Below are positions 2,045 to 28,377 of a stretch of 64,000 bases of DNA, in pieces. Under the pieces are notes generated by a model, which worked only from the letters and a program-made list of their open reading frames with translations, searched no databases and was not told where the DNA came from. Positions within the stretch are counted from its first letter, which is position 1. Each line of letters begins with the position of its first letter. Source of the DNA: Kudoa neothunni (Eukaryota > Animalia > Cnidaria); NCBI GenBank assembly GCA_964304625.1, contig OZ199839.1, positions 11,668,335-11,732,334 on the forward strand. The letters run 5' to 3'. A program made the position numbers and the translations under genes.

Positions 2045-2663
2045 ATTAAAATTGATGAAAAAAAGCAACCCTTCAAAAATATTACTTTAAATGTTAAATT
2101 ATGTAGGTGACAATAATATTTTTAATATTTAACAAATTGAGTACAAACTCAAACATGTTAATTGGGAGATTCATTATATACAGCCAAAGTTACCACATTA
2201 ATCGAAGAAGTGGCTTAAAAAAAGATTAGTCTATTTGAGCTAAAAAATGTGATTGTGCTCTCAAGAACTGGATTCATGCAAAAAGGTCCAGTAGGGTATT
2301 CTGATTTGCATCACTTTTATTAAAAACGTCGACAACATGAGGAAGAAAAAGTCATGTCAGACAGTTATATACTAAAACCAATTATTTCCTGAAATACAAC
2401 GACCAACTATAAGTCCTTCTATTTCACTCTTTTACACAACTATAGATCTTATCCAAACGATTGATCTAATTAATAATGCTTATCAATATCAAAGTGTTTC
2501 TACAACGATTAAACAACCATATTTCAAGTCATCAACCTGTGCAAAATTTTTCGTACATTTTAAAACAATGAATTCTGATAATTCATAATACTAGTACATT
2601 ATGAAACCATCTTCCATATCATATTACATATTTCTTTATAACGTTTCCAAAAAAGATGTTTAA

Positions 2664-4581: not shown

Positions 4582-5306
4582 TTAATTAGAATAAATAAAG
4601 CTATATAATTACATGATTTATGTTTTCTTAAAACTTGCTACATGTAAAAATTATATAATTATAGGCATAAGTAAACAATAAAAAGGGATTTGTTTAATAT
4701 CTAATTATCAATAAAATAATTTTAAAAATGTTTTTCCGTGAATTTATTTTTCTGACTGATATTGTAAATTCTAGAATATGGTCACCCATTGAACACACTG
4801 GTGGTTCATAACAGCATTTCTTATAATATTAAATCTAATATAATAATGAGGATAATATTACTTTTAGTTTATAAAGCAATGACAGAATTTCTCAGCTTTT
4901 TAAAGTGTAACGCACGCTTGCGAAGTATCTGTCTATTGCGTGACCTCTCTCTAGTCTAGTTGAACCACGCAAAAGCCACGTCAAACTGTGTATCAAAAGG
5001 GGTAACAAATTAATTTAAATGATATTATGTGTTAAATAAAAGTTAAAATAATATTATCGCCAAATTTATTAAGTGTGTATAATATAAAATCGTATTAATA
5101 TATAATAAATTAAATAATTTCAAAAAACAATAACCGTTTAGTTTTTTGCAAAAAATATATAGTGCAAATATAAAATATGTTCCTTTTGTAACAGATCTTC
5201 TGGCCATTTTTTTGTTATTCAAAATTAACCAATTTATCTTAATATTTTATTATAATAAGAATTAATATTTGATGATTAAGATATATTTTAGTTAAATTCA
5301 CATGTA

Positions 5307-7654
5307 CAGTCAACAACGGTTACTGCGCACTTTTGGGGGAATGGCAAAAAGGTGTGCGATACACATTCTGTGCCCAAGATTCCCCTAATTGTGCATGAGT
5401 GTAAGATAAAACGCAATTATTTTCTTTGAAACAAACTAATTAACATTTATTTTTTAGAAAAATTGTTATAAACTACATTTCTTCGTATATTTCACAATTT
5501 TAGATATCCTATCCATCACGGGATAGAAATCATTCAATCTATATGAGTGTTAAGTTGAAATGTTCAGTGTATTTCTGAGATAGCATTCTTCAGTTTCTCC
5601 GCCTTTAATAAGTACGTGAGGTGGTAATTTTCATTGTAATTTGCATCATATTAAGAAATTTTATTCCAAATAAATGGATTGTCCTTATAAGAATAAAAAT
5701 AAGATTCCATAATTTCACATGTTTTCATGATCTAACTGATTAATAATGATACAACCACCTTGTTGAATTTATCAAAACTTTAAAAGTTGAGAATTAAAGA
5801 TAAGCTTGATCGTCTTGTGTATCTAGAAAGGTGTTCCTTCCGAATAGTTGAAATAATTTTTTTAATTCAATTTAACGAATTTAATTATAAACAGATTTGG
5901 ATTTATCAAGGTCCGGTTGGGTAAGAAAAAACAAAAGATCTACGTAAGAATCATGACATATATGGGTGCGCGGGTGTTAATAATGAAGTTTTTATTTTAC
6001 ATTTGATTTTGAAATTCTGTGATTTCATCTTATATAATCGTTTATGATTATATTCATTTTATTTTGTTGACAATGATGCAATTAGATTCTATTACATTTG
6101 AAGAACGTAATAAAATATTTTTATAAAAAACGGGTTTAAAAATGTTAATTTTTAAATCTAAAACATACAGTTTGTTCCATTATATCATTCGCTTATAATA
6201 CTTATCATTTATAATTATAGGCATTTTTTGTATTTAAAAACAATTTCGATTATACCACTAAAATTTTTAAATATTTACAATTAAACATCATTTTCAATAA
6301 GAAATAATAATGTTTTAGTTTTTAAATTTTTTGGTCATTTTTCTCTCACCTAATTTAAAAGGTATTTAATTAATAATGGAAGACATTGATCATTGAATTT
6401 TTTTCAACCGTTTTTTCCCGCATAATAATAACAATAATAATACGAATTTATACGTCATTTATAATAAAAAATATATCATACGTTTGATAAATTTATTTGA
6501 AAATTGTTTAACATAATTATTTAACATATACAAAATTACCATTGTCATTATAATGACCAACAAATCCACATAGAGTAAAAAGTCTTAACATTAACTTGTT
6601 CTTTTTATTTGTCTATAATTTAATTAATTGATGAAACTCTTACTATTATAGATAAATTTTATATTAAAAGTTACATAAAATTAAAGCAATATCGATTTCA
6701 GGAGTACAACAAAAATATTTCCTTGCTGAAGAGCAAAATTACATGACCTATGCAATTGTAACAAAATCTTTCGTCTCCTGTAATCATTTTCATCTCTTTA
6801 TATGTGTAGATTCTCTTAAACATAAATACATCCGTGTAACGATAGTATGCACATTTGGGAGAATTTAAAATGGAACAAAATACAAATTTAGCTCCATATT
6901 ACCGTTAGATTGCACAGACATAAAACAAAACTTAGTAATATTTCGAGATTAATGTAGTGTATGATTATTTGCAAACATGTTACACGTGTCAATTATTTGT
7001 TTATTACATCATTTTAATATTTCATATAAGATTTACTGAATGAGTTAATCCATCAAAACTATTATATACATTTCTCACAAATTTTAGAGAATAGATATTT
7101 TAGTTTATTATTAATCTTTAATTATTTATTTTAATTGATTCATTAAAATGAATGAAAGTAAAATTTAGTTATTTTGTTATAATTGATTGTCGTTGGTCGG
7201 ATTCTTCCAAGATTCAATCGGATCATATATATTTGATTTAACATCAATATGATCACTGATATTAGGCTCTCAGGGATATATGTATAAACGAAATCAATTA
7301 ATATTTAGTAATTATGTCCACAGTCTTTTATAAAAAATATTTAAATGCTATCCACATTGTTCTCATTATCCATTTGTCGTAGTTACATTATTTACATTAA
7401 ATATAATAAAAATACTTTCTACATTGTTTTTAAAAAAAATTTAAATTTTATCAATAATTAAAACTCCGCCTTAATGGAGAAATTTATACTATATTTTTAG
7501 CATTTGTGAAAGGTTTTTTTTAAATAAATAATTCCAAATGTTTTTTTAATAGCTTAAAAGAGGTATAAGATGGAATTGCACCTTATAACGTGATAAAATA
7601 ATGACACAACGAAAAATGCGTAGTATCGACCTACGCAATAACCGTTGTTGACTT
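5307..7654. mobile_element. Non-autonomous Tc1/mariner-pogo type element
   Basis: TA-flanked ~21-bp TIRs CAGTCAACAACGGTTACTGCG and CGCAATAACCGTTGTTGACTT. The 3' part recurs at 62228-63027. Confidence 0.7.
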
Positions 7655-8154
7655 TAATCAAAACTAACAAACTAAGCATACACGTATAATGGTATCTTCT
7701 AGAATTAGAAATTTCATTATTTGTATTCATTGAAGACAGTGATATCTATGAAACCCTAATAAAATTGTAACGACAGAAAAAACAAAATTGATTTTATAAT
7801 AATACTTCAACTAGAATCAATCAAAAATCTAAATAATAAATAATGTAATAGTTGGAAATTGACTCATAATATCTTTCAATATTTTGTATAATATTCATAT
7901 CTTATCAAATATTTTATTATTGTTACATTTCAAAATTTAAGAAACAAATTAGAATAGCTATGCATTTAAAATTTATTTTAAATATTATTAATATAATGAC
8001 TGACAGTATAATTTATGAGACGGGAATTATTTACGTTATTTGAAAAGAGCTAGAAACATATATATTATTTTAAATTAACAATATAATTTATTTTATCTTG
8101 AAAAAATTAATTAGATAATTTACAATTCAATGGTATATTCATAATAACTAATAG

Positions 8155-11100
8155 GAAGCTATGGGTGAAGTTGTAACCAATGGTGAAGATCATATATTAC
8201 GAATAAGCTTCACATATAATACAAAAACCGATGGAAAATATATTAGTTATTACCGTTTCATAAATGGTAATTTCAATGAAGAAAAGGAATTAAATAAAAG
8301 ATTTGAATGCGATGAAAGACAAATCTCGACTTCCCCTCAAAGTATGTGTTTAATCAGTTTCGAAGTTCTCCCTGATCAAATAATTAAACTTTGTTCGATT
8401 GTCAATGAAAATATATTATCTTGCAAAATCTACAAATCCAGTAATTAAATATAATATTTTCAAGTAATGGTATTTTTATCATTAAAATATTTAGAATATT
8501 ATTTTCAGAATATTCGGTTGTTATCAATTATTGACAATCATTACAAAATTGAAATATCATTTAATTCGGATGTTGAAACCAAGTGTTATTTTTCATTTGA
8601 TTTTATCGATGAAAGAACCATACCTTCTAATCCAATAAATTGTGCATGTGACGAAAACAACTATGACATCAAATGTTCTAGTTACAAACCCTATTTGCTT
8701 GTTGGACGCACTAAATTAATTACATTTGCGCTGGATAATAAATCACAATTTTTTGGTTTTCTCAAAATTTCTGTCCCAATGCCTCTCAGTATTTTATATT
8801 ATTTCAATATATTATAAGCTCATAATAGAAACGTACTTGGATAGAAGTGAATACTCAGTAATTCATTTGGAAAATCAGGAAAAAGCAATAATAAAATTTA
8901 ATCCATTTTACTGTGAATATGCTTTTAAGGGAAATAATTTCGCCAAAAATAGAAAAAATACATCTACCATCACTGGAACGAAAATAAGCGACATTACCAC
9001 CACAAGTTATGGTCACCACGATTTCACTTGTCCTACTATCTCAGCATACATTCTACTGGACAATATTAAAATACAATTAAGTAATTCATTCACAAAACAA
9101 AATTATTCACTCCAAATAAATGGTAGTTAATTCAATTATCTAAAATTTCTATAATTACATATTTAGTATTCAATAATTACCGTCTAGTCGATTATAGTGC
9201 CATAATCTTGGGGAATGACATTTATTTCTTTGGAACATTAAATAAATTTGCCAATTATAAATATACTTTGAATAATGTTCTCTATATAACAAAATCTGAA
9301 ACTATTGACCAACAAAAATTATATACAAGTATACAAAATATTAAAATTGTTTGCGAAGGTTACTATTGTTCGAGCCTTTCTTCCCAAATCACTGATGCCA
9401 ATATCCTAAAATATAATATATTTATGGAGATATTTAAAAGAATAATTAAATTTGATAAAAGTATTATTTATTTATATTCTATTCATAATTATTATTATGT
9501 TTTGATGAGTAATTTTTTAGTTCCTACTGTAATAAGTGTTGACATCTCTGAAGTGAGCGATAAACAATATATGATAGTTTATAACATTGACCAGAAACTT
9601 CAAAAAATAATCATAAATGAAAAAATCACTGATAAATCAAACAATACTTGTTATACGGATGTGAATAAAACTCTCTTATGTGATTATAAATCTTGTGGAC
9701 AAACGATCACTATCAAGAGCGGCTGTACCCCTCCATTCTGGTTACATATTGATTCAAAAGATATGATTATTTCAAATTCGGTTTTGAAACGTAATTGAAA
9801 CTAATAATTAGGAGTGATTTCATTTTCATTATATTTAGTGGAAGATTCAAAAAGTGAGGTCGCGTTTGAGTATATAGACGACATGCACCATAATAACTAC
9901 AATATAATATTAAAATTAAAAAGAAACGAAACTAATAGAGCCTTTATTTCAAATCATATTAATATTGGTTCTAACACGATAGCAGATGAGTGCTACAGTC
10001 TAATAGATATGATAAAAATATCTTTGGTAATGGTCGAGATAAAATCTGATTGTTTAGCTAATTCTAAAACTATTAAATATTTGTATCCACTGGAACATGA
10101 TCCAGGTGAAAGTGACACTCGTAATAAAATTTCTGATCTCTATTTAATGAAATATCTTAATAGATAGCTTATATAGTTTTGGAAAGGCGATGGTTGACAA
10201 AAAATCAATAAAAGTATACTTATTTTCTCCAATACCAAGGGGTACATTAACACCGTCTTATTTAACTGTGGAAGATACAACAACAGGAGATGACATATTT
10301 GGCTCATTTGATACTAATTTAATTAGCAGTTGCGTCCAAAAAATTTGCACTTTTGTAATACCTTTGAAAGAAGATATACTGTCGGATAACCTTAAAATTA
10401 CTGCATCGTTTGATGGAATTAGTTCATTTGTGTATCAAATTAAAAGTATATGATGTTACATGAATCAAAAAATATAGATTGATTAGGTCCAAACGAAGAT
10501 CTTAATTATTATCTTTTCAAAACTACACATGATAATCTAATTCTCTATTTGGAAGGTGAGACAATTGCACCTGGTGTCGAGGTACTCTTGGAAGACGACA
10601 GAAACTCAAGATATTCTTGTATTATCAAAACGAACGAGGGAAAATTTTATTGTACGATTGCTCGAAACAATATATTGGATGGAACATATTTCAAATTCCC
10701 AAACAGTAACACAAGAATAAATGTAAAGAAACCTAAAGGTGATCGCCATTTAAAAATATTGGATATATTTGATGCAGTTATAAATAACTGACGAACTTAT
10801 TTACAACGCCAATAAAAATATTAACGTTACTATCGAGAAAACCCGGGAGCGAGCTTATTTAAATAAAAAACACCTTGAAAAATTAACAAAAAATGTTAAT
10901 CTCTTTATAAAACATTTTTCTTAACGGAATAAATTCATAATGTGTCTAATTTCAACATTTCGTAAATCTTGTTAAGTAAAATAAATATTCTAGTCGTATA
11001 AAAGTACTCTACTTCGTATAAGAGCGGGATTATTAGGTTACAATGATTTAAAAGAATCAAAATGATCTTTATCTTTCAACTGATCCGTCGAATAAAGTAT

Positions 11101-14100
11101 TAAACCCTAATTTTAATAACAGCGTCGTTCTTTTGACAACATTATTAATAAAAATAAACAGTAATATTCCAGACCTCTTCTCTTTCTCCTTGAATGGATT
11201 TTGTCATCATCTAGAAATCGAAATTTCTTAAAACTCCAATGGCGTACTAATCGCATCAACTAACCCATCAATCTAAAAGTTTGTTGGCAAATTTTACTCT
11301 AAAATAAGTGTGTTACATTCTTCTTAAATCCATATAAAAATCATCGACAAAATCAGCGTTAATTAAAGGCGCAACATTATAATATTCTCCCCTATCCCGA
11401 ATCAATCTCCCGCTTAAAAGACACGTCGCCGTTTACACCGCCGCCTTGCCAACTCACGTACTCACAAACACAAACCCCTTTGGTCGACTTAACTATTTTC
11501 CAAGAGTTAAAAAGAGTAAAATCTCAACGAAATGGTTGAATATACAGCAAATAACCAATTTCACACACTTTTAAAACCCCGATTTAGTTAGAATATTGAT
11601 TGGTCATTGATTATATATGTTTCTTATAATTTTTAAATCAAGATTTTTCTAAAAGTTATTTTAAATAGTTATTAAATAATGTTACCGACAGTCACGTGAT
11701 TCACAAATTTCATGCACCATTTTCAGGTACTTCTTGTTTATTATTTTGTAAAGTCAATATTTGATTCCAAAAACTCCTATAACTATACCTTTTGTCGAAA
11801 AGTATAATATTAGTTATTATTATGAAAGTCTCCAATCTAATGACCCAAAAAGTGCCACTTTGTCACCTTTTAAAATATCTATTATCCCGACTCCTAATGG
11901 CATCCTAGTGATGAAAAATTAAATAATCAAAACCTATAAATGTTTTAAGAATCTAAAAATAGAAGTTATTTGCACGTAGAACAATTTCATTCTGTTGATC
12001 AAGATTTGTACGAGTACATTGAGTGGGATCGAAGAAAAATGGTTGTAGTAGGCACCGTCGCGATAACCAAGGGAAATTAATTAGCCGATGAAAAAGGTTT
12101 ACTTTCATATGCAATTCGTGGTGGATATCGCTGATATAAAAAAGGCCCCAACATTTATAATTCTAATTTTATTAATTAATCTACTGATGTTATGACTGAA
12201 ACTACTTCAGAGTGGTTCACTCAAATCTGAATATTTTTTTAAATATACTCTGAAAATTTTATTCGCAATGTAGACTAAACTGTCTTATTCTACCAATAGC
12301 AACAATGGAGATATTTCATATATTTCTGAAAAATAGTTTTTTGTTGATAATACATTTCTCGGATTATAATATACAGTTATTTAATCAGCTAAAACGGAAT
12401 AGAATCATATTGCATCCTTGAACATCGACCTTATTTTGTTATAGATGATTATATGAAATCCGAATAATTGTTCCACGTACAAAATAACGGAAATTAGTTT
12501 AATCCGTTCCTGCGTATCGAATAAAGTCTATTTTTATTTATTTGAAAATGTACACACCTTGTATCTATGAAATATAATAAAAAATATTAATTATAATAAT
12601 ATAAATGAAATATAGGATTAATATTTTTTGGTTTTTACACGAAAAATTAAATAGGTTTCTCCTTCGATGGCGGTCGCATGAATTGATTAAGCGGCTCTTC
12701 TTCTGGAATTTCTTTTCTTCCCTGTTTTTTACTCCAACTGGACTTCGCTCTTATTTTGATGCGTTTACTAATATAAACACATACCTAAAATTAATTGCTT
12801 TGCCTTTGTTTAGAATTCTTCTGAAGTGGCTCATTACGATATGGTTAAAAATGTCCTCTATTCGATTTACCAACACTGTATATCAGGGGTCTCCAAACTT
12901 TTCTCTTCATCGACCCCCTCCATAGATTTTATTAAAAATATTAAAGTATATTCAGCGTTTTGACTGTAACAATTAAAATTATGTGCAATATCTCACATTA
13001 ATGTTCTATTTTCGGTATATAATAAAATGCAATATTACACTAACACAAAAAACTTTTACTAACGATGTAACATCAAATATATCAGACAAATCTTAGATAT
13101 TTGTAAATTTACCACAATAAACCTGTTTTTCATTATAAATTATATTCAAATGACCTCCTATGTTAGGTCTTCTGTATATGATTATAATTACATGTTTTTG
13201 CATAAATATGAATACAGCGCAGATTTTAAGATTAAATTACATTATATATAGAAAAATTAATATTTATTCATAGCTGCCTTTAATAGTTAACAAGAATGTC
13301 TTAATCTTTACCCTTAGATAGTGTTCCTTAGTCTGAGGTCGCTTCAAGAGTTTTTGAAGTGTCCACAGGGGTTCAAACGACATTTACTTGTTGTTATTAT
13401 TATTTTCGTAGCTTTTATAATTTTGTTTGAAATCAATTTAAAAATAAGACTTATCTTTTATAGTCAATTATAAATTTAACGTAAACTATCGTTATTGTTT
13501 TGTATATTATGATATCAACAAATACTAGTGATCATTTAAATTCGAGATATTTTAAAATGAGGAAAAATTAATTTATTACTTTGATTAAAATAATTATTTA
13601 ATGAATGATTTTGAATAGCGCATTTATCTTTAACTATGTCATTATATGCATTTTTATTAATTTATCAAAGAGCACATTTATTAGAGTAAGCGCGGTAGTT
13701 GTTCTAATCGTACCCTTTAAAATTATAGACAACAAATAAAATTTTTAGAGATATATCAAATATTTTTTTAAATTTATACTTTTATAGGTTTAATGAGGGA
13801 GTATTAAAAAATAATTCATTTGGAAGTTGGTATATTTAAATAGTAATGAATTGGTGCTAAATTTGAAATTTAATTTAAACAATTTTATAAATCATTTAAA
13901 ATATGCAGTTTCCATGGTATCGGTTTTGAATATTGGCAATTTTAGTGAATATCGAGTACACCCAAAGCTGAGAACAGATAGCCCAGTGGTGTGGTGACTG
14001 GACACGATACCCGCCAACTGATCAGTCTATTGTTTCCGTATGAGTGTACCACTATCCCGTAATGAGAGCTGTTATTAGAATGGGATTGCACTATAAGTGT

Positions 14101-17100
14101 AATTTCCTTTGCACTTTTAGTTCAATCTAACAGAGAAGGTTGAATTAGACGTTTTAATCGTCGGATGCTCTAACAGACCTGAAATCTCGGTAGAGCCTAA
14201 GTCCTTATGGATTTGTGCGTACGGTATGGGATGGTGCATGCACCACCAATAAGAATGTTTAGTAGGTTAAATACCCACACTACTCAAGAATGATAAGGAC
14301 AAAGTGGTAAATGTTACTCGTCTTACGGTGTCTACAGCGTTGTTGACGATGGTCTAACCATCCATATCCTCATAACCTAAAAAAAATTCGCCAGGGGCTT
14401 TACCTTGCAAACAAAAAAAAATTAAAAAGAGTAACGGAAAAAACTAGAAAATGGTGCTATCCTAATTAAATATATTAAATTTAATGATTTAGCATGCCTT
14501 CATTTTTATCTTCTTCCTAGTATACGTAATTCTGGTTCCGAATCTTAATTTAAAAATACATTTTATTATTAGTAAGATGTATAGTACGGAATATTTAGAA
14601 GTATAAATTGTTACTTAATTTTAATATATCCATTGTCATTATCGTTCAAGTGAACTGCTTGGTGGAGACATATTAACCAATCAAATAACGAGTTATCATT
14701 AATAATTATTTTATTTAATTAGTTATCTCCTTATTCACTCATATTCACATAATAAATATTTAAATACATCAATTATTTTCGTATAAATTAAATTTTTGTT
14801 CTAATAAAGAATGATATTAAAATATTTTTTGAAATAATGGCTACGTTCATATCATTTCTTGTTTATAAATTCATCTACGGATTTTATTAGTATGCGTTTA
14901 AATTATAATCGTATATTTATTATTCTCTAAAAATATAAATATGAGAATATTTATTATTTATAGATATATCTATCATCCAAATTTGTTGGTGACAAATTAA
15001 CTAATACATATTGAAACTCTTTTACTCCTATATATATATATATATATATTGTCCTCTGTTAACGATTATGATAATTTAGAAATATTAAGCACTGAATTGG
15101 ATTATTATTGGGAATCTCAAAACCTGAATATTGTATTGACGATAGTTTCAGAAGGAATATTATCTGAATTCAACATCAATTACCACCTGTGTGAGGAAAA
15201 TCCAACGAAGAAAAATTCATCGCAGAGACAACAAACAATTAAATGCGCTAACAACAGATGCAGTTGGACAGTAGAAAATATCAAATCTGACAAAAATCAT
15301 ATTTTAACGTTTTCATCACAAAATCTTATAAATCATATGTCTTATTTTATCAGGAATGGTGAATGTAATATTTCATTATTGGGATACAATAAATTTTTCA
15401 ATTGCCATATAAATTTTAGACGAGTGTCCCTTCGTTGGCGTTAAACAAGATGACAAAGCTACTGGTGGCGTTTCAATAATAATAGAATTATTAGGTGTTA
15501 TGCCGAAAGTCTTATACATCACTTATTCCTTATATGAAACAACTGATGGAAACAAACAAGTAATGCCAGAATCTACTCAAAAGATACCCTGCGTTAAATA
15601 TGAATGCACATTAAAAATCCCAGACATATCACAAACAAAAAGCTACGATATTATGTTATCCATACCAAAATGCACCGATAAAATAAATTTCAAAATAAAA
15701 AATTGTACTATTTATATACAAATATATTAAATAATTTTCTCTGTAGCTCCCACCACTTACGACTTAGTGTACAATTACCAAATAACCAGTTCCAACAAGG
15801 CCACCCTTACAATAATAATATCGAAACTTGCAATACCATATCAAAAAATTACTTTCGATTGGTTTTTAAAATTAAGTAAAAGCTCAGTACCTCTTCAATC
15901 TTCCACTTCATTGGTTGAACTTACAGATGAAAATTCATCATTTTCATTTCAAATACCAAATATTGATCTAGATTCGGAATACTTCATTGATTTTTCATCC
16001 GACTATCTCGCTGCAATGCCTCATAAAACATTGATTGTTAAATGTATATTTATAAATTTACTTTAATATATTTTTATATCAAAATTTTAATTAAGCGAAA
16101 ATCAATTATGAAATAATACAGAAATGGAACGATGGCAAACTTTCAATTTCATTAAGATTGAATGTACCAATAAATAAATTATGCATTGATATTGAAATTA
16201 CCACTCTTAAAAAAACGAATTCTGGAATAATAGAAAAATCCACAGTCACTCTGAATGCAACTTTATTTTGTGACCAAAGCGTTTGCGACTATGAATTTGA
16301 AAATGTGACCAAAAAAGATCATTTCAAAATCGCGTTAGTATCGAATTTATTACAACCCAAAGCTCCTATCATCCTTAAGAAAGGTAAATCATTATTAAAT
16401 AATTTAGAAATTGCAACAAATTTTTTAGAACCTACTACATTTACTATAAATCAAAAATACGAAAAAAATGTATTCTTGGTGGAGTTTTCATTGCATAATA
16501 AATACAATGAGATATTCATCAAATGGAGTTTGTCGGACACAGAAGGAAATTTGGTCGAACATTCTGGCAATTTATTCAAAGAGGTTGTGATTTACAATGA
16601 TAAATTTGTCCTCAATCTTGGGAAGCTGTACCAAACTAAAGAATACAAATTAAAGTTTGAATCCGAAGAACTTGATGGGAATAAAGAACTTGCAATAAAT
16701 AGTAACAACTAATCAAATATTGAAATAGTTGACCATTCCTAATTTTGTTTAAAACAATAATTATAATATGTTGTATCATTTAAAAATATATTATCCTGTA
16801 TTTAACTAATAATGATAATTTTAGAGAAGTTTGACTATGTCATAAAATATAAATGGGATTATCACAAACTAAAAATAACATTGGAAATTTCACCGAGTGA
16901 ACCTCGGATGGATTTTACCATCGACTATTCTTATTATGAAAATGATAAAAAACCAGAAAATGTGGTTGAAAATAATAAACCGATTCAATGCGACACAAAT
17001 ATATGCACGTTTTTAATTAAAAATATAAATTACGCTGTCGATCACACATTTTCGTTCCATGTACCAAGTCTCGTCGATAATGTTCAGTATCAAATAAAGA

Positions 17101-20100
17101 AAGGTACTTAGATTATCGAAAATGGCTTGTAATTCTGTTATTAATTATATTATTCAGAACCATGTCCGCTGTCAGATATACAACTGAAACCTCCAGAAAA
17201 CGAGGATCGCACTCTAATAATTCAACTGTTATTTGCATACGAAGAGTTATCGGTTGATTATTCAGTTTATGAATCAGATGAGAATACTAGCTTAATAATT
17301 CATGATCCAAATAAAAAGATAATTTGTGAATCGACCATATGTGAATTATCCATCCCAAAGCTAATACTTACAAAGTCTTATAACATTGTTGTGAAAGTAC
17401 CCTTGTGTAAGGAAAATTTGACGATATCAACTGAAAAAGGTACAATATACCACTCATAAAAATAATAAATTTTTCTAGCTCGAAGCAATTACACATTAAC
17501 ATACAGTTATCAAAAAGAACAGTCCAACAAAGTTACACTTACTCTACAATTAAAGCTTTTATTACCTTATGATAAAATCGAGTTGGATTGGTCTTTGAAA
17601 GCAAATTCCAATGTCGTTATGAGATCATCTTCAAAAACCGAGCTGACTCAAAAGAATTCCATATTTTCCTTATCTATACCAGAAGTTGATACAGGAAAAG
17701 AATATACAATTGAGTTCACTTCCAAATATCTCGTGGAAAAAACAAATGGGAATATCATAATTAAAGGTATGTAATAATAAACCCGCTAGTTCATTCGCAG
17801 TCATTTATTTAATTAATGATATATTAATAAATGAATATTATTATAATTCGACATTTTTCAAATAAAAATAATTCAGAAATAATTGTTCAATTTATGTTTT
17901 ATTCTCAAGAAATAATATGCAAGATAAACAAAATTTAATTAAATTAGTGATTATACAATGGATTATAATTTGATTTCATTGTATACTTATTATTTATGAT
18001 AGATGATATATATTAATTTATATCATTTAATTAATTAATTGTGTGAATATCACAAAAGAATTGATATCACCGTGAAATTCATGTTAAACCTAATTTTAAC
18101 CCTCCGGTATCCAGGAGAAAAGCTTACGCACATACATAGACGTGGACATTGTTTCCAACCACCCAAAAAACATCGGATTATATAATTGACTACGAATTAT
18201 TTAATTAAACATATTTTGCATAATATTAAATTTATTCTGCATTCACCGTAATTGCCTTGTTCACACGGACTGCATTTTGTGCGGCATCGTTTTTGGGAGA
18301 TCTGTTACAAACACAGAAATGTTAACGTTTTTCGAATCTATGGTTTACCCTTTCACTTTTGTTTTGTATATTTGCTTTGGATTCCACTATGAGTTCTATT
18401 GCTAGCTGTTTTTGGAAATCTCTTATGACCAAAGCTTTTATTGGTTAAGTAATTGAGAGTTTCTAGATCCATATAGTTGAAATTCATTATACACATCTGC
18501 TTCTACTATATTGTAAAACACAGCATTTGGCCAGCGTCTAATGGCTCATTCTGTAGAATAGCATCGCACAAGCTGATCGAAAGTGTCAACATCATCATTT
18601 ATCGCATTGTAATATAGGATTATCTTAGGTTTTGATTTTTCCATTTCATGACCCCTATCAGAATCAATGTCCCAGGAAATACTTTGAGGTCATTAAGGTT
18701 AACCTTTTTGTGCGTTTATTCTCAATATTATTTTATGTTAAAACAATAATATTATTCCTTAAAATTAAACTATGTATACACTTTTCTAAGAAATCAATCC
18801 GTTTTATTTATTATAATTATACAAGTTTGGGAAAAAGTATAAACAATGTAATTGCGCTAACGTAACGTATAGTTTATATGGTTTAAAATAGTTGGTTGTG
18901 TATATTGATTGCTAACAAATATAATAATATAGTTCCAATAAATTATCAAATCAACAAAAAGCACGCAGATGATAAAGTTCAACTAACAATACAGCCAGAA
19001 ATAGATGTGAATCAATTAGAAGTCAAACTTGAATATTCCACTTTGAAAAAGACCCCTAATAAATATGACGTGAAGGAGACAAGATCAATAGATATAACGC
19101 TAAAATGTATCGAAAAAGTTTGCGAATATCTTTTGGAAAAAATTGACAAGAATGAAAACTATTACATTAAAATTGTGCCAGGTTTATTGCAAAAGAAAGA
19201 ACCTATTCTTATCAAAAGAGGTATTATTTTTCTGTATTATTATTAATATAATATATTCAAGAACCGACTACATTTGAGGTTAATTATAAATATAACAATA
19301 ATGAATTATTGGTTGAGTTCACATTGAAAATTAAATTTGATGAGATATTCATCAAATGGAGCTTATCAGACTCAATAAATGTTTTGGTCAAAAATTCTAA
19401 CGATCTGTTCAAAAAGGTTGTGGTCAAAGATAACAAATGTACCTTAAATCTTGGACCGTTGTATCAAACAAAAGAATACAAATTAACATTTGAATCCGAA
19501 GAACTTACTGGGAAGAATGAACTTGTAGTAGAAAGTAATAATTAATAAAATATCGAAAAAGTTGACTATTCCTACTTTTATTAAAAATATTAATTATAAT
19601 ATAATGTATAACTTAAAAATAAAAAAAATTTCTTGTTGAATTATAAATGATAATTTTAGAGAGATTTGAATATGCATTAAAACATGAATGGGATTATCAC
19701 AAACTAGAAATAACATTGGTAATTTTCTCGAATGAACCTCGGATGGAATTTGCTATCGACTATTCTTATTACGAACAAGGTAAAAATATTGCTGATGCGA
19801 TTATAAACAAAAAAACAATTATATGCGAACATCATATATGTAATTTTGAAATTGAAAATATCAACTATAAAGTTGATCACATATTTTTACTTCATGCCCC
19901 AAATCTTGTCGATCACCTTCAGTATGAAATAAAGAGAGGTGATTCAAAACTCAACAATGTGTTTCCATTTTCTTAATTTTATTATATTTAGAACCATGTC
20001 CATTGTCAAGTATACAACAAAAGTCGTTTGAAAACGATAAACTGAATCTAATAATTAAACTTTTATCGGCATACGAAGAGTTATCAGTTGATTATTCAGT

Positions 20101-23100
20101 TTATGAAACAAGTGAAAATACTGATTTACTCACTCTACACTCAAATGAACTGATATCGTGTATAATGAATACATGCGAATTATCCATTTCAGACTTAACA
20201 CTTACAAAGTCTTATAATGTTGCTGTGAAAGTACCCTTGTGTGAAGCAGGCAGGACTCTATCAATCGATAAATGTATAATATCCGAATCATAAAAATAAT
20301 AAATTTTTTTAGCTCGAAGCGATTACACAATAACATACAATTATCGCAAAGAAGAGTTCAATAAAGTTACACTTACTCTACAATTGCAGCTTTCACTTCC
20401 TTATGATAAAATCGAGTTAGAATGGTCTCTGAAAACAGGTTTGAATTCAGAGGTCGTTAAGAGTTCATCTTCGATGACTGCGCTGACTAAAGAGGTTTCC
20501 TTATTTTCATTATCTATACCAGAAGTTGATATAAATAATGAATATACAATTGAGTTCATTTCCGAATACCTTGTGGAAAAAATAAACAGAAATATCCTAG
20601 TAGAAGGTATATAATAATAATGTTGTTTATTTCATTCGCATCTAACTATTTAATTGATACTATATTCATGATCTAATTTTAATAAAATTCATTAATTTTT
20701 CCAAATTTAACAATTAAGTAATAATTAATCTATTTATACTAAGTTATTAGCAAAAAATTTAAAAAAAATTAAATATTATATAAGGATTAGAATTTGTTTT
20801 TCATTGTTTATTTATTATTTAGAATACTTAAATAGGAAGTTTCATTATTTCGATTAATTAGTCTTATGAGTACTACTAAATAATGGATATAATGTGGAAG
20901 TTTATAAACAAAAATTAAATTAAAGATGTAATTTACATTTATAATGGGTTTGTAATTCAAATTTGACAAATAATATATTTTCTATACATAATAATTAATA
21001 ATACATATGTACAATCCCTGTTATTTTTATGTTTATTATAAAATAAAATTACGAGGGATAGAAACAATTTTTTAAAAAACTGCATTCGATGATATAATCT
21101 TATATAACTGATTACCACCTTTCTGAAAGTTAGCTAATATTCACCAACAAATTTAGTAATTGTGTAAACTATTAAAGCAAATAATTCGATTTTTAATGTT
21201 ACAAATTTTTTAAAATGATTGTATTAATTTAATCCTAAACTATAACATGAGAATTTCAATTACTAAATTTTACATTTTAATCTTCCTTGTAGGTGGCGCG
21301 TGACCATGGGGGAGCCGATTGGGCCATTTGTGGACCATGATAAAAAAATATAAAACGCTTCAAATTTTTATTTAATAACTCAGCTCATCTCTTTGAGTAA
21401 TTAAACGCAATACATGGATAAATTGGGTTCCAATTTTCAGTTTTTGTTATTAATCGTGAGCATGTTAAAGTAGGTCAGCTACCTCCAAATTAATAAAATT
21501 ATGAGCGTTATAGTCTGTGAGAGTATTAAAGACAAAAGTAATCGTCGAGTTAATCAATTAAAAATTAAAATAAGCTGAAATGGAGTAGGAACATGACCTC
21601 GCCCGGACAGTTTTAATGACAAACGTGTTTGTCGCCTTTCAGAAGGCTCCGAATGGATTAAGTATATTTTGAATGTCTCATTGTTTTTCACAACACTGTA
21701 TTAGACAGCGATGAAAAATAATTTTTCAGTATCGTGTCGAGTTACAAAAATATTTGATTTGACGGTCAAAATATGGATATTTTTTCAAGAAGTTGAAAGG
21801 GGTTATTGTTGTTATAAGCATTCTGCGAGTGAATGTATTTATGATTATACTAAATGAACTTTCCGACTCACCACTCACCAATTGCGTTGGATACGAGTCA
21901 TGAGTACTTAAATTACTAAATTAAATTAACACATCGTTTTTTAGAATACAATAAAAAATTGTCTTCCAACAAGTTCTACACCAATAATAACAAATTTATA
22001 TAAGAAAACTATTTGAAATATTTGTTACATACGATAACTTACTTTTGCTTGGGCTGATTCGCATAAATTAATTTACCGAAATTAGAACGAAATAATGTGG
22101 ACTTGCTATCTTTGATCCATTAATAGAGAAAGCATCTGATATGATGTTGTTTTTTTGAATAATCAACATCGTCTTCGTAGGAATCGTCAGATTTTGATAT
22201 TTTAAAATCAGAATCATCATTGGAATTAAAATTAAGATTATTTTATAGAAGCTATTCGATATCTCTGCATGCATTATGCATTATTCGCGGTCATGTTGCT
22301 TAAGTAATGATTGAATATTATTTTCCAAGAATAAATAACTTAAAAAAGGATTAAAAAAGTTACGTTTTATTAACATAAAAAGAATGTTAAATTGTTTGTG
22401 TACGTATTAATTTTCGTTACCCTCATTTGAGTTTAGCTAGAAACAAAGATGCAATTTTTGAGTTAAATAACTTCCACCAGTAAAATCTAATTTAATTATT
22501 TAAAAAAAATAATAAAAAGTGATACAATATTACTTTTTTTGAAAAATAAAACAAATAAATAATCTTTTTCTCATAAAAAAGTGGTATAGTTATTTTTCTT
22601 AAATAATTGAAACGAATAAAAATTTGTTTGTTACAGAAGTCATCTTATTACCCAGACCCTTCTAGATGAATTAAATGTAGAGATCAAAATCCTTAGGGTC
22701 ACAGATGACCCCACATTGGACCGGGGGGTTAATTGCAGAATAAATAATCTATTTTATTATTAAGTTCGTAAAAATTAATATTTTTAGAGTTAAAATCTTA
22801 GCCTGAACTTTTTTGTTGTTAACAACTATAATAATTTAGTTCCAATAAGCTATAAAATCAACAAAATCCATGTCGATGATAAGGTTCAACTAACAATTCA
22901 GCCAGAGATAGATGTTAATCGATTAGATGTCAAACTCGAATATTCCACTTTGAAAAAGACTCTTAATAAATATGACGTGAAGGAGACAAGATCAATAGAT
23001 ATAACGCTAAAATGTATCGAAAAAGTTTGCGAATATCTTTTGGAAAATATTGACAAAAATGAAAACTATTACATTAAAATTTTGCCAGGTTTATTGCAAG

Positions 23101-25519
23101 AGAAAGAACCTATTCTTATTAAAAGAGGTATTATTTTTCTGTATTATTATTAATATAATATACTCAAGAACCAACTGCATTTGAGGTCAAGTATGAATAT
23201 AACAATGATGGATTATTGGTTGAGTTCACATTGGAGGATGACATAGAAGAAATTTTCCTTAAATGGAGTTTACTGGGAAAAGGAGAGAAATCTATAAAAA
23301 ATTCCAATGATCAAATTAATTTATTACCATGTGAAGCAAAAAAATGTTCCATCGAACTTGGCAAGTTGGACCAAGCTGAACAATATAAATTCGCCTTTCA
23401 GTCTGATGAACTTCAAGGAGTCAGCGAATTAATAATCGAAAGTAGATATTTTTTCATTAAATATAAATATTATTATTCGTTAAAAATTGATTAAATAAAT
23501 TATTTTTTTATTTATATTCACTTTTTCTAGTTAACTGGGAAATACTTTTGACAAAATCAGAAGAATTGGATAAGACAATGGAACTCAATGACGAACCAAT
23601 AGTATAGTTAATTATGCCGACTTTTCATATGGTATGCATATATTAGATTACCGGTAATTTTATAAAAGCTTGGAATAAAATAGTGTATGAAGTAATCGAA
23701 ACAAGTAACTAAAACCACGTACAATTACAATTATAATAACTTTCAATTTAGCACCAATTCAAAATAATTCAACCATTGAAGACAGCCCAAAAAAAGAGAA
23801 GGAGGAAGAAACTTCGTAAATAGATCAAAATAATGACATTAATATAATAATTATCTTGTTTGTAGAATCTTCTTAAAACAAATTAACCTTTTGGACAAGA
23901 ATATCATAAATATTGACGTTACTGAGGAAGTCGATTCGGACAATATAAAATTGAAGACAATCACAACACAAGAGGCTTCAAAAACGATATATTTTGCTAA
24001 ACCAATAGCCGACAATGAAATTAATGACATGTTACAGAATTCAACGCTTGCTGTAAACAACGATGAGCCATTGCAATCCACTTATTTGCACATGGAATTT
24101 TCAGCTGATGATTCTTCCGCTGAAGCGGACAACCAGAGTAAAATTGTGTTGGCCGTAACGAAAAATAAGGAAATTAACAATTCAACACAAACGAGTGATA
24201 TTATTGCAGGAGATGTGCTAATCATAAAAGTTTCAAATAATCGGACAAAAAAATTAAATATAACGTTCAGTCAAATTATAAAAACCAATGATAAAAAGAA
24301 CAATTTTAGATGTTGCACGTTAGATAGTATATTAATACTATTAATTATTGTAAATAATAACCATGTTTCCTTATAAAGGTAAAACGTTAGCTTGGGAAAC
24401 TAAATACTGCTCAATTTTACATGAAGTCCCTATTTCAACATTCCTCACCAATTACACATGCACTTGCAATCACACAACAAGTTATGCAATCATATACGAT
24501 ATTTTTGACGACGATTCGACAAAAAATATTTATTATCAACATCAAATATCCCTAATCACAACTGGCATTTCGATGGTATTTTTGTTCCTCACATTTGTGT
24601 GCATTTTATCATCTAAGTAAATTTTTTACGGTAAATAGAAATTGAATGTTAACTGTTTGATTATAGAGTTGTTAAAAAAATAAGAATTTTGGCTCAATTG
24701 TGGATGTGTGTGGCTATATTTATATTCCACTTGGCATTTATCTTGGGAAATGTGTTTAACAAAAAACATCGTTCCTGTTTTTATGTTGCCACCTTTTTAC
24801 ATTATAGCCTTATGAGTCAATACATGGCGTTGTTATTAAATTCTCTTGTTGTTGTCAAAAACCTTTTATTAACAATGAAAAAAGTAAAGAAAATAATTAT
24901 GAAAATTATAGCACTACTTTTTCTAAGTGAGTATATTCGTTTAAACTTAATAATATTTAAATTTTAGTCATTCCTATATTTGTTGCAGCAATTTCTAGCC
25001 AATTATTTAGTGCTAATTACGTCATAAAAACAAAGTATTTAAGTTATATCAATTTTCATTGCAATTTATTTGAATATTTATAGTTGTATTCCACATGGTT
25101 GGCTAAAGTTGGTGACAATCACGATTCCTGGAGTGTGTATACTATTTTTTAATCTAATGGTATTGTTCCTGGTATTACGCACAATCTACAGGTCCGAAAT
25201 TACAAATAAGAAAAAATGTTCAATCAATCAACGAGCAAAACAGTTACTGTTCCTATTCATGATGTTAGGAATGCCGATGCTAATCCAATTTTTATCCTTC
25301 TTCATTAAAAGTGAAATAATTATATTGGTTTCCAATTGTTTAAACACGTCAATGGGAACATTCTTATTTTTCATCTTTGTTGTTGGAAACAAAGAAATGA
25401 GAACTCATATAAAATCAACACTTGGAACAGGATCAAGCCGGAAGAGGATAATATCAATGAATAGAAGTAAATCCACAACCAAGATGACAACTTTTACATC
25501 AAGATATAAAAAACGATAA
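8155..25519 (+). CDS. Giant adhesion GPCR (GAIN/GPS + secretin-like 7TM) with 23 tandem beta-sandwich-like ectodomain modules; gene 1, 5' end not identified
   Basis: 31 GT-AG exons splice in frame without a stop: 8155-8440, 8495-8788, 8829-9122, 9167-9460, 9521-9790, 9839-10120, 10164-10445, 10487-10738, 15080-15358, 15420-15704, 15747-16043, 16096-16383, 16429-16701, 16825-17103, 17158-17439, 17479-17766, 18933-19220, 19262-19534, 19660-19938, 19992-20273, 20313-20606, 22840-23127, 23169-23441, 23531-23601, 23647-23704, 23752-23815, 23866-24326, 24379-24616, 24667-24926, 24968-25034, 25084-25519 (~2,700 aa). The GPS motif W-x4-C..YTCTCNHTTSYAI is followed by seven hydrophobic helices, ending LNTSMGTFLFFIFVV, and a basic tail. 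Confidence 0.85.
11950..12300 (+). mobile_element. pogo/Tigger transposase remnant in the long intron of gene 1
   Basis: Degenerate CENP-B-type HTH (VDQDLYEYIEWDRRK..) followed by N-V-D-*-T-V-L-F-Y, which resembles the NxDETGLF motif. Confidence 0.45.
12884..12925. mobile_element. hAT (Charlie-type) terminal fragment
   Basis: CAGGGGTCTCCAAACTTTT..CGACCCC is a typical Charlie/MER-like terminus. The partner end was not found. Confidence 0.4.
13967..14420 (+). mobile_element. tRNA-derived SINE-like element
   Basis: GC-richer island with an A-box TAGCCCAGTGG (13979), a degenerate B-box, several hairpins and an A-rich tail. Its 5' ~120 nt align with 36065-36200. Confidence 0.6.
15028..15049. repeat. 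(TA)n microsatellite just upstream of the acceptor of exon c1
   Basis: About 11 perfect TA units. Confidence 0.9.
18100..18640 (-). mobile_element. piggyBac 3'-end fragment in an intron of gene 1
   Basis: TTAA|CCCTCCGGT terminus. The minus strand reads KPKIILYYNAINDDVDTFDQLVRCYS..RRWPNAVFYN, the third catalytic Asp region. Confidence 0.75.
21700..22728 (-). mobile_element. piggyBac 5'-end fragment in an intron of gene 1 (left boundary uncertain)
   Basis: Terminus ACCGGGGGG|TTAA (22729-22732), subterminal palindrome GGGTCACAGATGACCC, and a highly decayed N-terminal transposase-like sequence on the minus strand. Confidence 0.55.
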
Positions 25520-26487
25520 ATTCCTGTTAGTTAAAATAATATTGTTATTTCTCTAGTATAATATTAGTTTTCGTTCTTAGTTAGATTTCATTTCTTTAAT
25601 TTGCCTTTAAAATAAATCCATATTTGTAAACATTTCATTTTTATCATGTCTGTATACCCATTAAAAATCTTAAATTTTTGTCTCAACTAATAATTTGGTC
25701 TAAATAAAATACTTAAACGGATGAATTAAAGTTTATAATTTCCTTAAATTAACAATTTTGTTTATTTTGTAATTTATTGCTACATACGTGCCAGAAAAAT
25801 ACTAACAGAAATAAATAATAAGTTGGTCGCAAGATGGTTCTTACGCGTTAGACCAGTGAAGAGAATCTTATTACGCAGAATAGTTGCTGCGATAAAAACA
25901 AATTCCTCACTTGAAAACACAGCGGAGTAGTTGGGAACTTTTTATCCAAAAATCGAAACTATTGTATTACGATGTATTATTTTATTTTTGTTTGGGAACT
26001 TATACAATTACCAATAGTATAATAACCCTCGAATATCTGGCAAAATAGTTACATGAATTTTTGAAGAGGACCGCTATGGTCCTATGCAATTTATTTGTAG
26101 CATATTTATATTCAAATCTATTTAACTATAATGATATATAAAACAATCTAATAGCATTGTTATAAGTTATAAAAAATGAAAAAAAAATTGAATTATAAAA
26201 TTAAAATCAAATTTTTTAGACGCGCGCATTAAAAAAATAAATAATTTGAAAATATAAACTTATTATTTTATGATTGTAATTGGCAAAAAACCATTATAAT
26301 AAAGATATAATCAATAAATTATTTTGTTTATAACTACAAATGATAATTTGATACAAAAATACAAAATAAATTAGTATTTTACAACATTAAATTGAATTAC
26401 ATGTCCAATCTATCTATACCATCTCATTATAATGACATTAATTCTAATCGTTTTGTCTAAAATCTAAATAGGTAAATTACACAAGTA

Positions 26488-28377
26488 CAGTCGAGATTGG
26501 ATATTACGTGATTCGGTATTGCGTAATTTAAGATTTTCGATATGAAGATATTTACATTGGGACTTAATTTTAGAGTTATATCATTACTTTATTTATTAAA
26601 TTAATAATATAGAATAAAAATAAAAAAATATTTTTTCTATGTGCCTCTGATTTAGTATTGCGTAAAACCTTTTTATTGCGTAACGTAAATTACCAACGTG
26701 ACTCGATATTGCGTGATTTCATCTTCGATATGTCCAGGGAGCAGCGTGAAATTTCTGAGAAAATTAGAATAATACAATATTACAATTCAATAAAATCAAT
26801 AAAGGGCGCAAAGAAAATGACGGTTGAAAAGTTTAAACTTAGTGGTATGATTATTTTTAATCGATAACAATTTATTTCTTAAAGGACATTCAACGCTTGA
26901 CAGAATTATTTCTCATGAAACCAAGCTTAAAAATTCAGATGTTGCAGGAAATAGGAAGAGGCATTCAATTGGAAGATTTATCAACATAAACGAAGAAGTT
27001 TATGAATGGTTTACCAAAAAACACACCAATGGTCACATTTCTGGTGACGTAATACTTGAAATGGCCACCATAATTGCCAGAAAGAATGAAGTTCAAAATT
27101 TTAAAGCAAGCAGGGGTTGGCCAGCTGGGTTTAAAAAAAAAATTGGAACCATTTTCAAGCGTTTTCATGGTGAAGCTGCGAGCGCTAACGTCGCGTCTAT
27201 TGATTCATGGATCTATGAAAATAAAAATTTGATAAGCATATATAGCCCATAAAATATAATCAATATTGACGAAACTGGTTTATTTTATGAGCAATTACAG
27301 AAAAATAGTTATTTATTAAAAGAAGAAAATGACATTAAAGATAAAAAGCTATCGAAAAAAAGAATAACGATTTCGGTATCGTGCTCTTTAAGCGGAGAAA
27401 AGTTGCCCCTAGTCGTAATTGGGAAATACCAAAACCCCAGGTGCTTCAAGGGGGTAAAAAATTTACCTTATGAGTATTATGCCCAAAAAAATTCTTGGAT
27501 GACCTCTGCTATTTTTTTCCAGATAATGAAAAAATTAAATTTTAAAATGGAATCAGAACAACGAAAAATACTACAAGTGTTTTACAGCCACTCGATCTCG
27601 GAGTGATTAATTGTCTCAAAAGTAGATATAAAAAAATATTGTCTAGCCATATGGCATTATGTGATGATTCGTTAAATAATAAATTTACATTACTTAATGC
27701 AATTTTGACACTCCAAGAAGCATGGAACAGTATTCCATCTGAAATTATTGTCAACTGTTTTAAAAAGTCGGGCATATTTAGCGAAAGTAAAAGCTAATGC
27801 GAACTTCAAAAATCAATCCATTATCATAGAAGATACAGAGACGGAAACAAATGATAAAATTTTAGAAGATGAATAGAATATAAATATACAATAAAATTTT
27901 AATATTTTTATAGTCGAGGAGGAAACATGGGAGATTAACTTTGATGATGATAACGGCGATGTCTTAATATCAACAGTGAATCCAATTCAGAATGAAATCG
28001 AATCTAATGAGGAAGAACCAAAAGTTCCAATAAAAGATATAAAGCATGCCGTAAGTACATTAAGGAAGGTGTTTATTCAGGAAGATCCATCTGGACTCAT
28101 CGATCTTCATCCGACAATTGATCGAATTTTAAAAATATCTCAAAGATAGCACCAAACTAAAATTACTTCATTTTTTCATAAAAATTAATAATTTTGTCTG
28201 GTTGAGTTAAATAAAATTCCTTATATTTATTTTATTTCACTAGCAATGATTTAAAGTAGGATAAACGCACAAAACAAGTTCAAATCGAATAATTTTACAA
28301 GTGCGCTCATGTGCGTGACTCGATATTGCGTAATTTTTCCTTGGTCCCAAAAATTACGCAATATCGAATCTCGACTG
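26488..28377 (+). mobile_element. pogo/Tigger-like DNA transposon, defective
   Basis: TA-flanked TIRs CAGTCGAGATT(G/C)GATATT and repeated GATATTGCGT subterminal motifs. Protein motifs FKASRGW, NIDETGLFY, KRIT..GEKLPLVVIGK..NPRCFK, SWMTS, QPLDLGVI, AW..I...NCFKK. Confidence 0.9.

Follow-up and report, generated by a model that had tools for sequence, protein, structure and literature searches.

What kind of protein is encoded by a long row of similarly sized exons in the genome of the myxozoan Kudoa neothunni? We analyzed a stretch of 64,000 nucleotides (assembly GCA_964304625.1, contig OZ199839.1, positions 11,668,335 to 11,732,334 of the forward strand), which we refer to as the window and in whose numbering all plain coordinates are given, and focused on positions 8155-25519. 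This region is probably the 3′, and larger, portion of a single very large gene that encodes an adhesion-type (class B2) G-protein-coupled receptor (GPCR) and belongs to a lineage-specific myxozoan family. The protein would contain, in this order, a signal peptide and about nine modules encoded upstream, eight further modules (E1-E8), fifteen modules of a predicted fibronectin type III (FN3) fold (E9-E23), a linker, a GAIN-type region with a GPS motif, and a seven-transmembrane (7TM) domain. The fifteen FN3-fold modules would be built from a five-module unit A-B-C-D-E that was duplicated in exon blocks.

The exon model was obtained by enumerating frame-keeping GT...AG pairs, followed by a border-by-border check. 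The window is AT-rich (about 27-30% G+C). On the plus strand of 8155-25519, we found a row of stop-free stretches of 90-100 codons each; the minus strand shows no sizeable open frame over the same interval. These stretches correspond to 23 plus-strand exons of 252-297 nt with AG/GT borders throughout and no stop codons. All exons from E2 to E23 have a length divisible by three and phase 1-1, and E1 alone is phase 0-1. Downstream of E23, the frame runs on through six further exons to a stop at 25519, so that all 29 exons within the window are stop-free, with consistent phases and GT-AG borders. The original prediction had described 23 consecutive exons of this size range, phase 1-1 except for the first and in frame to a GPS-7TM region, and our rebuilt model confirms this, with exactly the exon sizes given there. 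The introns between the 23 module exons are mostly very short (39-125 nt for 19 of them); the three exceptions, of 4341, 1166 and 2233 nt, all contain dispersed repeats. The features of the gene within the window, in which TM stands for transmembrane segment and ECL2 for the second extracellular loop, are:

8155-8440, plus strand: E1, 286 nt, phase 0-1; unique module of N-terminal type; the gene starts further upstream
8495-8788, 8829-9122, 9167-9460, plus strand: E2-E4, phase 1-1, from splice sites and frames
9521-9790, 9839-10120, 10164-10445, 10487-10738, plus strand: E5-E8, phase 1-1, from splice sites and frames
10739-15079, plus strand: intron 8, 4341 nt, containing an interspersed repeat
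15080-15364, 15420-15704, 15747-16043, 16096-16383, plus strand: E9-E12, predicted FN3-fold modules of types C, D, E and A
16429-16701, 16825-17103, 17158-17439, 17479-17766, plus strand: E13-E16, predicted FN3-fold modules of types B, C, D and E
18933-19220, 19262-19534, 19660-19938, 19992-20273, 20313-20606, plus strand: E17-E21, second A-B-C-D-E block
20607-22839, plus strand: intron 21, 2233 nt, with dispersed repeats
22840-23127, 23169-23441, plus strand: E22 and E23, types A and B
23752-23815, plus strand: linker exon, 64 nt, phase 1 to 2, Lys/Glu-rich
23866-24326, plus strand: putative GAIN body exon, 461 nt, 153 amino acids, ending in the first GPS cysteines
24379-24616, plus strand: exon for GPS and TM1, 238 nt, with the putative cleavage site H-T↓T and the tethered agonist TSYAIIY
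24667-24926, plus strand: exon covering TM2, TM3 and the beginning of TM4, 260 nt
24968-25034, plus strand: mini-exon of 67 nt for the rest of TM4 and ECL2
25084-25519, plus strand: last exon, 436 nt, with the ECL2 cysteine, TM5-TM7, the C-terminal tail and the stop codon

In the TM4 region, donor 24926 (GTGAGT) and acceptor 24968 were preferred over donors at 24930 or 24966 and over a mini-exon that begins at 24999; this choice yields a full TM4, and the stretch is conserved in paralogue 2 as well. Two introns, 9461-9520 (60 nt) and 16384-16428 (45 nt), are multiples of three and contain no stops in the exon frame; their retention would insert 20 and 15 residues, respectively, between modules while keeping the frame.

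The assignment to the adhesion GPCRs is based on the 3′ part of the gene, for which homology searches were performed exon by exon and sharpened by profiles built from paralogues. The GPS region reads ...RCCTLD / KTLAWETKYC...YTCTCNHT↓TSYAIIY. A profile of the GPS exons gave six matches in the PDB, all of them adhesion GPCRs, including ADGRL3 (latrophilin-3; E 1.5e-3). Here, the profile segment CtCnhttsYaiif pairs with CSCNHLTNFAVLM of ADGRL3 in an alignment spanning the cleavage site, the tethered agonist and TM1, and TSYAIIYDIF is aligned with TNFAVLMAHV. The motif CNHTTSYA is invariant across nine paralogues, the GPS exons of which are otherwise 41-87% identical to that of this gene, and the invariant T-S-Y-A is followed by hydrophobic residues in all paralogues. 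When the TM5-7 exons of eight loci were combined into a profile, 24 out of 24 PDB matches were adhesion GPCRs, with ADGRF1 as the best one (E 1.3e-6), and the alignment is colinear. The TM2-3 exon had a single PDB match, ADGRE1, at E 0.33. Class-B hallmarks can be recognized in the sequence, with a cysteine before LHY in TM3, the cysteine of ECL2, and the motif N-x-S-x-G-x-F within TM7. Taken together, the GPS motif, the tethered-agonist sequence and the class-B 7TM region back the proposed adhesion-type GPCR. The genome contains at least three genes for G-alpha.

The exon for the putative GAIN body is found at no fewer than 14 loci, each time just 5′ of a 7TM exon. Between this exon, with its phase-2 acceptor at 23866, and E23, which ends in phase 1, the linker 23752-23815 is the only frame-keeping link we found, and it has good splice sites.

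We next asked how far this family extends beyond the genome. A search of 1.84 billion representative proteins with the FN3-like module profile revealed nine weak matches at E 1e-3 or better. Five of these are short fragments of true modules from metagenome or run assemblies, and the four long ones are mostly bacterial repeat proteins. Pfam assigned bacterial-type repeat domains (DUF285, MBG, PKD/CHU_C) and fn3 to five of the longer matches. Outside this genome, we found the modules only on short metagenome contigs, in line with the proposed lineage specificity. Two of these contigs are informative with respect to gene structure. Contig L049 (3.4 kb, 19.5% G+C) contains modules, a similar acidic and basic linker, GAIN, GPS and TM1, and the 7TM exons in a row with only short gaps. 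It is 32-38% identical to this gene (34% for the GAIN-body exon, 38% for the last exon). Its last exon reaches 24.2 bits with the Pfam model 7tm_2, above the cut-off of 20.6, and the counterpart of the TM2-4 exons 20.4 bits against the same cut-off. On contig L048 (3.1 kb), E2-E8-like exons are directly followed by C- and D-type modules, and the intron at the E8-E9 junction measures roughly 170-230 nt compared with 4.3 kb in this gene. The gene order on both contigs thus provides independent support, from other organisms, for modules and receptor being parts of one gene.

The modules preceding the receptor end fall into two groups. For the larger group, a hidden Markov model (HMM) built from 60 modules recognizes E9-E23 with E-values of 1e-19 to 1e-28 (E9-E16, 1e-19 to 6e-26; E17-E21, 4e-21 to 4e-26; E22 and E23, 2e-19 and 4e-28) and nothing on the minus strand. 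Five module types can be distinguished, arranged as C D E / A B C D E / A B C D E / A B. A C-x4-C pattern is present in 14 of the 23 modules. Because of the HMM scores of E9-E23, together with ratios of nonsynonymous to synonymous substitutions (dN/dS) of 0.35-0.52 (see below), the module array is far beyond chance.

An AlphaFold model of E14, calculated from an alignment of 60 module sequences of this genome, shows seven strands over the whole exon translation with a pLDDT of 86.3. When compared with 48,161 PDB representatives by VIA-align, the top 50 matches were almost all FN3 domains (Z 9.4-7.8; root-mean-square deviation 2.2-3.4 Å over 79-91 of 92 residues), among them those of LAR, LIF-R, IL-12R, tenascin, fibronectin and integrin beta4. 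A TM score of 0.76 to an fn3 domain was obtained in the ESM Atlas; the Foldseek E-values are weak (best 3e-3). A Pfam search with all 23 modules gave nothing usable: PF00041 is absent at E-values up to 1, and the nearest scores are those of NDNF Fn(III) (E 0.041, two modules) and Fn3_Dep-1 (E 0.1). We are confident that the repeated module adopts a predicted FN3 fold not visible to sequence models, with E9-E23 assigned by their homology to E14. The resemblance to FN3 noted in the original prediction therefore fits E9-E23, and the AlphaFold check it had proposed yielded, for E14, a seven-stranded FN3 fold without a Pfam match. Likewise, none of the 23 modules matches a Pfam family, as expected from the claim that domains of the classic adhesion-GPCR families are missing. 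The proposed novelty of the modules is true for their sequence, which is unfamiliar, but not for their fold, which is familiar and already known from adhesion-GPCR ectodomains.

The second group, E1-E8, is not significantly recognized by the HMM of E9-E23 (best score, E7 with E 0.07). Each of these types occurs once per gene: a genome search revealed nine E5-type copies, one in each of nine paralogues. The order of E1-E8 is preserved in the paralogues, as is that of the E2-E8-like exons on L048, and E1 is 36-48% identical to its paralogues. The model of E5 (pLDDT 86.9) is a β-sandwich that best matches immunoglobulin-like (Ig-like) domains of glycosidases and aminopeptidases (Z 7.8), followed by FN3 domains at Z 6.2-6.4. 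All these scores lie in the range of a common arrangement of strands, and the modeled E5 is a generic Ig-like β-sandwich. No usable match was obtained for E5 in an ESM Atlas feature search. By hhalign with per-type alignments, E5 and E4 reach a probability of 36% and 22%, respectively, against the E9-E23 family, which is weak but colinear. These alignments superseded a rough one of all E1-E8 sequences that mixed unrelated module types and gave 0.3%. A two-module target (E4, read-through intron, E5) was discarded, since MAFFT placed E4 homologues onto E5. Hence, the pattern that had been described as common to all 23 modules reflects one sequence family only for E9-E23, whereas E1-E8 lie outside the profile. 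The translations of E14 and E5 each fold on their own into a complete β-sandwich in the models, in agreement with the notion of one domain per exon; from these two module types, we infer the same for the others.

The gene does not begin within the window. Position 8155 is a conserved splice acceptor: the phase-0 acceptor of E1 (ATAG/GAA) and the phase-0 donor of the upstream exon U9 are conserved in all four close copies, and E1 is the sole asymmetric exon because the U9-E1 junction is phase 0. An ATG at 8161 was rejected as start codon, since no signal peptide follows and 8155 is a conserved acceptor. Nothing module-like is present at 1-8154, where only a piggyBac remnant was found; this remnant lies at about 2900-4030 within the 8.3-kb intron between U9 and E1. 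About nine further module exons and a signal-peptide exon are located 8-14 kb upstream, in the 10 kb 5′ of the window (sequence L044). These module exons are arranged in the same order as those at 43.8-47.7 kb of a second copy within the window. The signal-peptide-like exon (MKIILITLFLIASKVLTNG), judged by eye, is found just 5′ of the first module. Two paralogues have an equivalent exon at the corresponding place, and none was seen except before the first upstream module. The extent originally claimed for the gene, 8155-25519, thus holds within the window but has to be extended upstream.

To place this gene in its family, we searched the genome with individual exons. With the last exon, we obtained 16 matches distributed over about 15 loci, and the GAIN exon likewise matched 16 times at these places, which provides the count of family members that had been suggested as a check. 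At least 100 matches of the FN3-like profile were found, essentially all clustered 5′ of these about 15 GAIN-7TM loci and on the same strand. The order of signal peptide, upstream modules, E1-E8, FN3 array, linker, GAIN and 7TM recurs in paralogues on chromosomes 1 and 2, and we infer a single transcript from this conserved gene order. The number of FN3 modules is 15 here and at C2:11.82 Mb, about 10 at 11.75 Mb, at least 13 at C1:15.96 Mb, and 4-9 elsewhere. With nearly all module exons in phase 1-1, modules can be gained or lost through unequal crossing-over or gene conversion while the frame stays intact. The differences between the paralogues show that such gain and loss has taken place, and it does involve blocks of exons, as anticipated from the symmetric phases. 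Skipping of exons in the RNA is a speculation. The copies at C2:10.48, 10.505 and 10.534 Mb score identically, which suggests a very recent triplication. At the paralogue at 11.76 Mb (C2:11761867-11762299), the last 7TM exon is distributed over two frames with a TAA, and the 3′ end looks broken.

Traces of block duplication are visible within the gene itself, where 16427-18067 and 19260-20890 share 74.5% and 18909-19365 and 22816-23272 share 89.7% DNA identity. Relative to the copy located at a distance of 136 kb, E1-E16 are 72-76% identical, a tract of 5.8 kb reaches 97.5%, and the 3′ end 93%. The 97.5% tract (17704-23532 versus C2:11822479-11828300) includes two long introns and their inserted repeats. 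Such a mosaic pattern fits recent gene conversion or unequal crossing-over. In comparisons with paralogues (Nei-Gojobori, summed exon by exon), dN/dS of the modules is 0.35-0.52, and the two blocks within the gene give 0.52. For the GAIN, GPS and 7TM exons, dN is 0.28 and dS is saturated. These values indicate coding constraint that is looser in the ectodomain.

Further downstream, the window contains a second paralogue and several transposase remnants, which lie between and around the two receptor genes:

43669-55580, plus strand: second paralogue, with a signal peptide at about 43.7 kb, upstream modules, E1-E8-like modules, broken FN3 modules, GAIN, GPS and 7TM
26851-27800, 30667-32218, 36933-38129, 40631-41803, plus strand: transposase remnants
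57465-57899, minus strand: transposase remnant

In the second paralogue, the GAIN exon codes for the same 153 residues as in the first gene. The FN3-like modules at 51.8-53.5 kb are spread over several frames by frameshifts or stops, the GPS exon is frameshifted just past the tethered-agonist motif, and so is an upstream module at about 45.1-45.6 kb; this copy looks decayed. One of the transposase remnants is of the Tc5/pogo type (HTH_Tnp_Tc5 and DDE_1), and four are of the piggyBac type (DDE_Tnp_1_7), one with an open frame of 391 codons.

Repeats are also found within the introns of the first gene. Intron 8 contains a repeat of about 830 nt (about 11540-12370) without obvious coding capacity, of which at least 40 scored copies (465 candidates) with 77-82% identity occur on all three chromosomes. 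A second dispersed family (at least 30 copies, 67-78% identity) is present at about 21270-22725 in intron 21, and this intron as a whole is 98% identical to C2:11825425-11827567 in paralogue P4. The assembly consists of three large sequences and one of 18 kb, and its introns are about 40-55 nt long. A (TAAACC)n array occurs at one place only, the end of C2 (C2:12039536-12040069), so that the receptor cluster (C2:11.66-11.83 Mb) is located about 210-380 kb from the sole assembled telomere. For the Kudoa neothunni genome, obtained from yellowfin tuna data, three chromosomes were reported, with a median intron of 49 bp, a G+C content of 30% and one end carrying a (TAAACC)n telomere (PMC12239612). 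The features of the assembly are in good agreement with these data.

Several observations weigh against an intact adhesion GPCR gene. The upstream exon U3 (L044:4380-4480, C2 about 11,662,715-11,662,815) shows a net one-base frame change relative to two paralogues. Either a genuine mutation or a mistake in the assembly may lie behind this change, on which the intactness of the copy depends. Neighboring copies are clearly decayed: at least four other loci carry stops or frameshifts, including the second copy in the window and those at 11.76 Mb (last exon), C2:6.08 Mb and C2:10.37 Mb (stops). Four introns contain transposon insertions, while the reported introns of this genome are about 49 nt long. 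Three metatranscriptome runs of 2026 that bear the species label yielded zero RNA reads for 19900-25600, a result that tests expression in neither direction. Contigs of one DNA run covered 30 out of 30 depth bins of this interval; their differences were not used as polymorphism, as they may stem partly from paralogues of 93-98% identity. The linker exon was placed by frame and splice-site logic only and is the least certain exon of the model. The GAIN body has no sequence match in Pfam or the PDB, whether searched singly, as a paralogue profile or as a combined profile anchored by L049, and because of this lack of relatives its GAIN fold is a putative assignment. The GPS and 7TM exons of this gene fall below the Pfam cut-offs when scored singly (GPS: E 1.4e-3, 19.6 bits, cut-off 22.5; last exon with 7tm_2: E 0.17, 11.5 bits, cut-off 20.6). 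Finally, the cleavage site is preceded by Thr instead of the usual Leu, which makes self-cleavage uncertain.

The frameshift in U3 and the decayed neighbors mean that this copy may be a young pseudogene. According to the alternative that survives best, the family assignment is unchanged, yet instead of a working receptor this copy would be a pseudogene, recently inactivated or not expressed, or would serve as a reservoir for gene conversion. Besides the damage in U3 and at the other loci, such a state would be compatible with introns of 8.3, 4.3, 2.2 and 1.2 kb filled with repeats, the recent conversion-like mosaic identity within the cluster, and the missing RNA reads. However, 29 out of 29 exons in the window are open with good splice sites, dN/dS is below 1, and U3 harbors the single frame break that we found in roughly 3,000 codons or more, with the upstream exons checked less closely. 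Moreover, this break could be an assembly error or affect a skippable phase 1-1 exon, and the RNA runs do not speak to expression. We regard an inactive copy as possible, though less likely than an active one.

It is much less probable that the modules are encoded by a secreted FN3-repeat gene, or several such genes, distinct from a much shorter GAIN-7TM gene that starts near 23.7 kb. No RNA reads were found, the long repeat-filled introns divide the array into clusters, and the linker is the weak point of the connection. Yet, E23 lacks a stop codon and terminates in phase 1 at a donor site, no ATG with a signal peptide is present before the GAIN exon, which begins in phase 2, and the modules are located 5′ of GAIN-7TM at every paralogous locus and on L049, with short gaps there. 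That the receptor-like end represents some other 7TM protein merely resembling an adhesion GPCR is hardly credible: the low single-exon Pfam scores, a six-frame PF00002 scan of the genome that found nothing (not even at the known loci, so that it is uninformative on other class-B receptors) and the isolated GAIN body could be cited in its favor, but the PDB matches of the TM5-7 and GPS profiles are exclusively adhesion GPCRs in colinear alignments, the class-B hallmarks are present in TM3, ECL2 and TM7, and the L049 homologue exceeds the 7tm_2 cut-off.

As an adhesion GPCR, the protein could function by analogy to known members of this class. A chain of more than 30 β-sandwich modules would project from the cell surface and might bind a partner, located either on a sister cell or on host tissue. 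Tension on this chain, or its loss at the GPS, would expose the conserved tethered peptide TSYAII(F/Y)D, which could then activate the 7TM domain and subsequently a G protein. A further-reaching idea, to which we assign a low probability, is that the family represents parasite-specific variable surface receptors, in which tandem copies, some of them near a chromosome end, and decayed copies exchange phase 1-1 exon blocks through unequal crossing-over or gene conversion and thereby diversify a host-facing or cell-recognition ectodomain directly wired to G-protein signaling. If true, this would be the GPCR counterpart to the variant surface gene families of other parasites.

Among animals, myxozoans are extremely reduced, and they have lost many signaling pathways. 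That about fifteen giant adhesion-GPCR loci are kept and remodeled in such a reduced genome suggests that G-protein-linked surface recognition matters to the parasite. About 5,300 genes have been reported for Kudoa neothunni, in a genome paper that does not mention receptors (PMC12239612), and our literature search found no paper describing myxozoan adhesion GPCRs. Since standard domain models miss both the modules and single 7TM exons, automatic annotation has probably fragmented or missed these genes. Much about this system is already known, namely the receptor class, the fold, FN3 domains in adhesion-GPCR ectodomains, very long repeat ectodomains and the phase 1-1 rule, and it does not constitute a new category. 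The family itself is new: it is multi-copy, actively remodeled, not picked up by standard domain models and, as far as databases show, restricted to Kudoa-like organisms.

With the adhesion GPCRs, of which ADGRL/latrophilin, ADGRF1 and ADGRE5 are the best solved matches, the predicted protein shares a signal peptide, a long adhesive ectodomain and a class-B 7TM domain, the four-cysteine GPS motif with its C-x-C-x-H-x-T site, a tethered agonist (TSYAIIY here versus TNFAVLM), the TM3-ECL2 cysteines, and N-x-x-(Q/M)-G-x-F in TM7. It differs by its very low sequence similarity, with single exons below the Pfam cut-offs, by Thr in place of Leu at position -1, by a GAIN body of about 190 amino acids for which we detected no relative and in which the helical subdomain may be absent, and by modules that match no classic family-defining domain.

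ADGRV1 (VLGR1) is a giant adhesion GPCR with about 35 Calx-beta repeats. Its design is the same, with dozens of tandem β-sandwich repeats forming a very long stalk before GAIN-7TM. Here, however, the stalk would consist of FN3-fold and unique Ig-like modules instead of Calx-beta, the protein is roughly half as long, and in contrast to the single conserved ADGRV1 gene the family is multi-copy and variable. FN3 domains have been described in the ectodomains of GAIN-7TM receptors of filastereans, choanoflagellates and metazoans (PMC12716839). Those domains were found by standard models, whereas in Kudoa neothunni the fold is seen only in the predicted structure, and the array comprises at least 15 copies derived from a five-module super-repeat.

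Fibronectin, tenascin and cytokine receptors are composed of exon-shuffled modules, with one domain per exon and phase-1 introns. The receptor gene described here has the same layout, in which gain or loss of an exon is neutral to the reading frame. In contrast to these proteins, the process is still visible here within one small parasite genome in the form of block duplications and mosaic identity. With its phase 1-1 domains, a five-exon block duplication and tracts of 97.5% identity amid 72-76%, the locus can be viewed as a living example of exon-module evolution.

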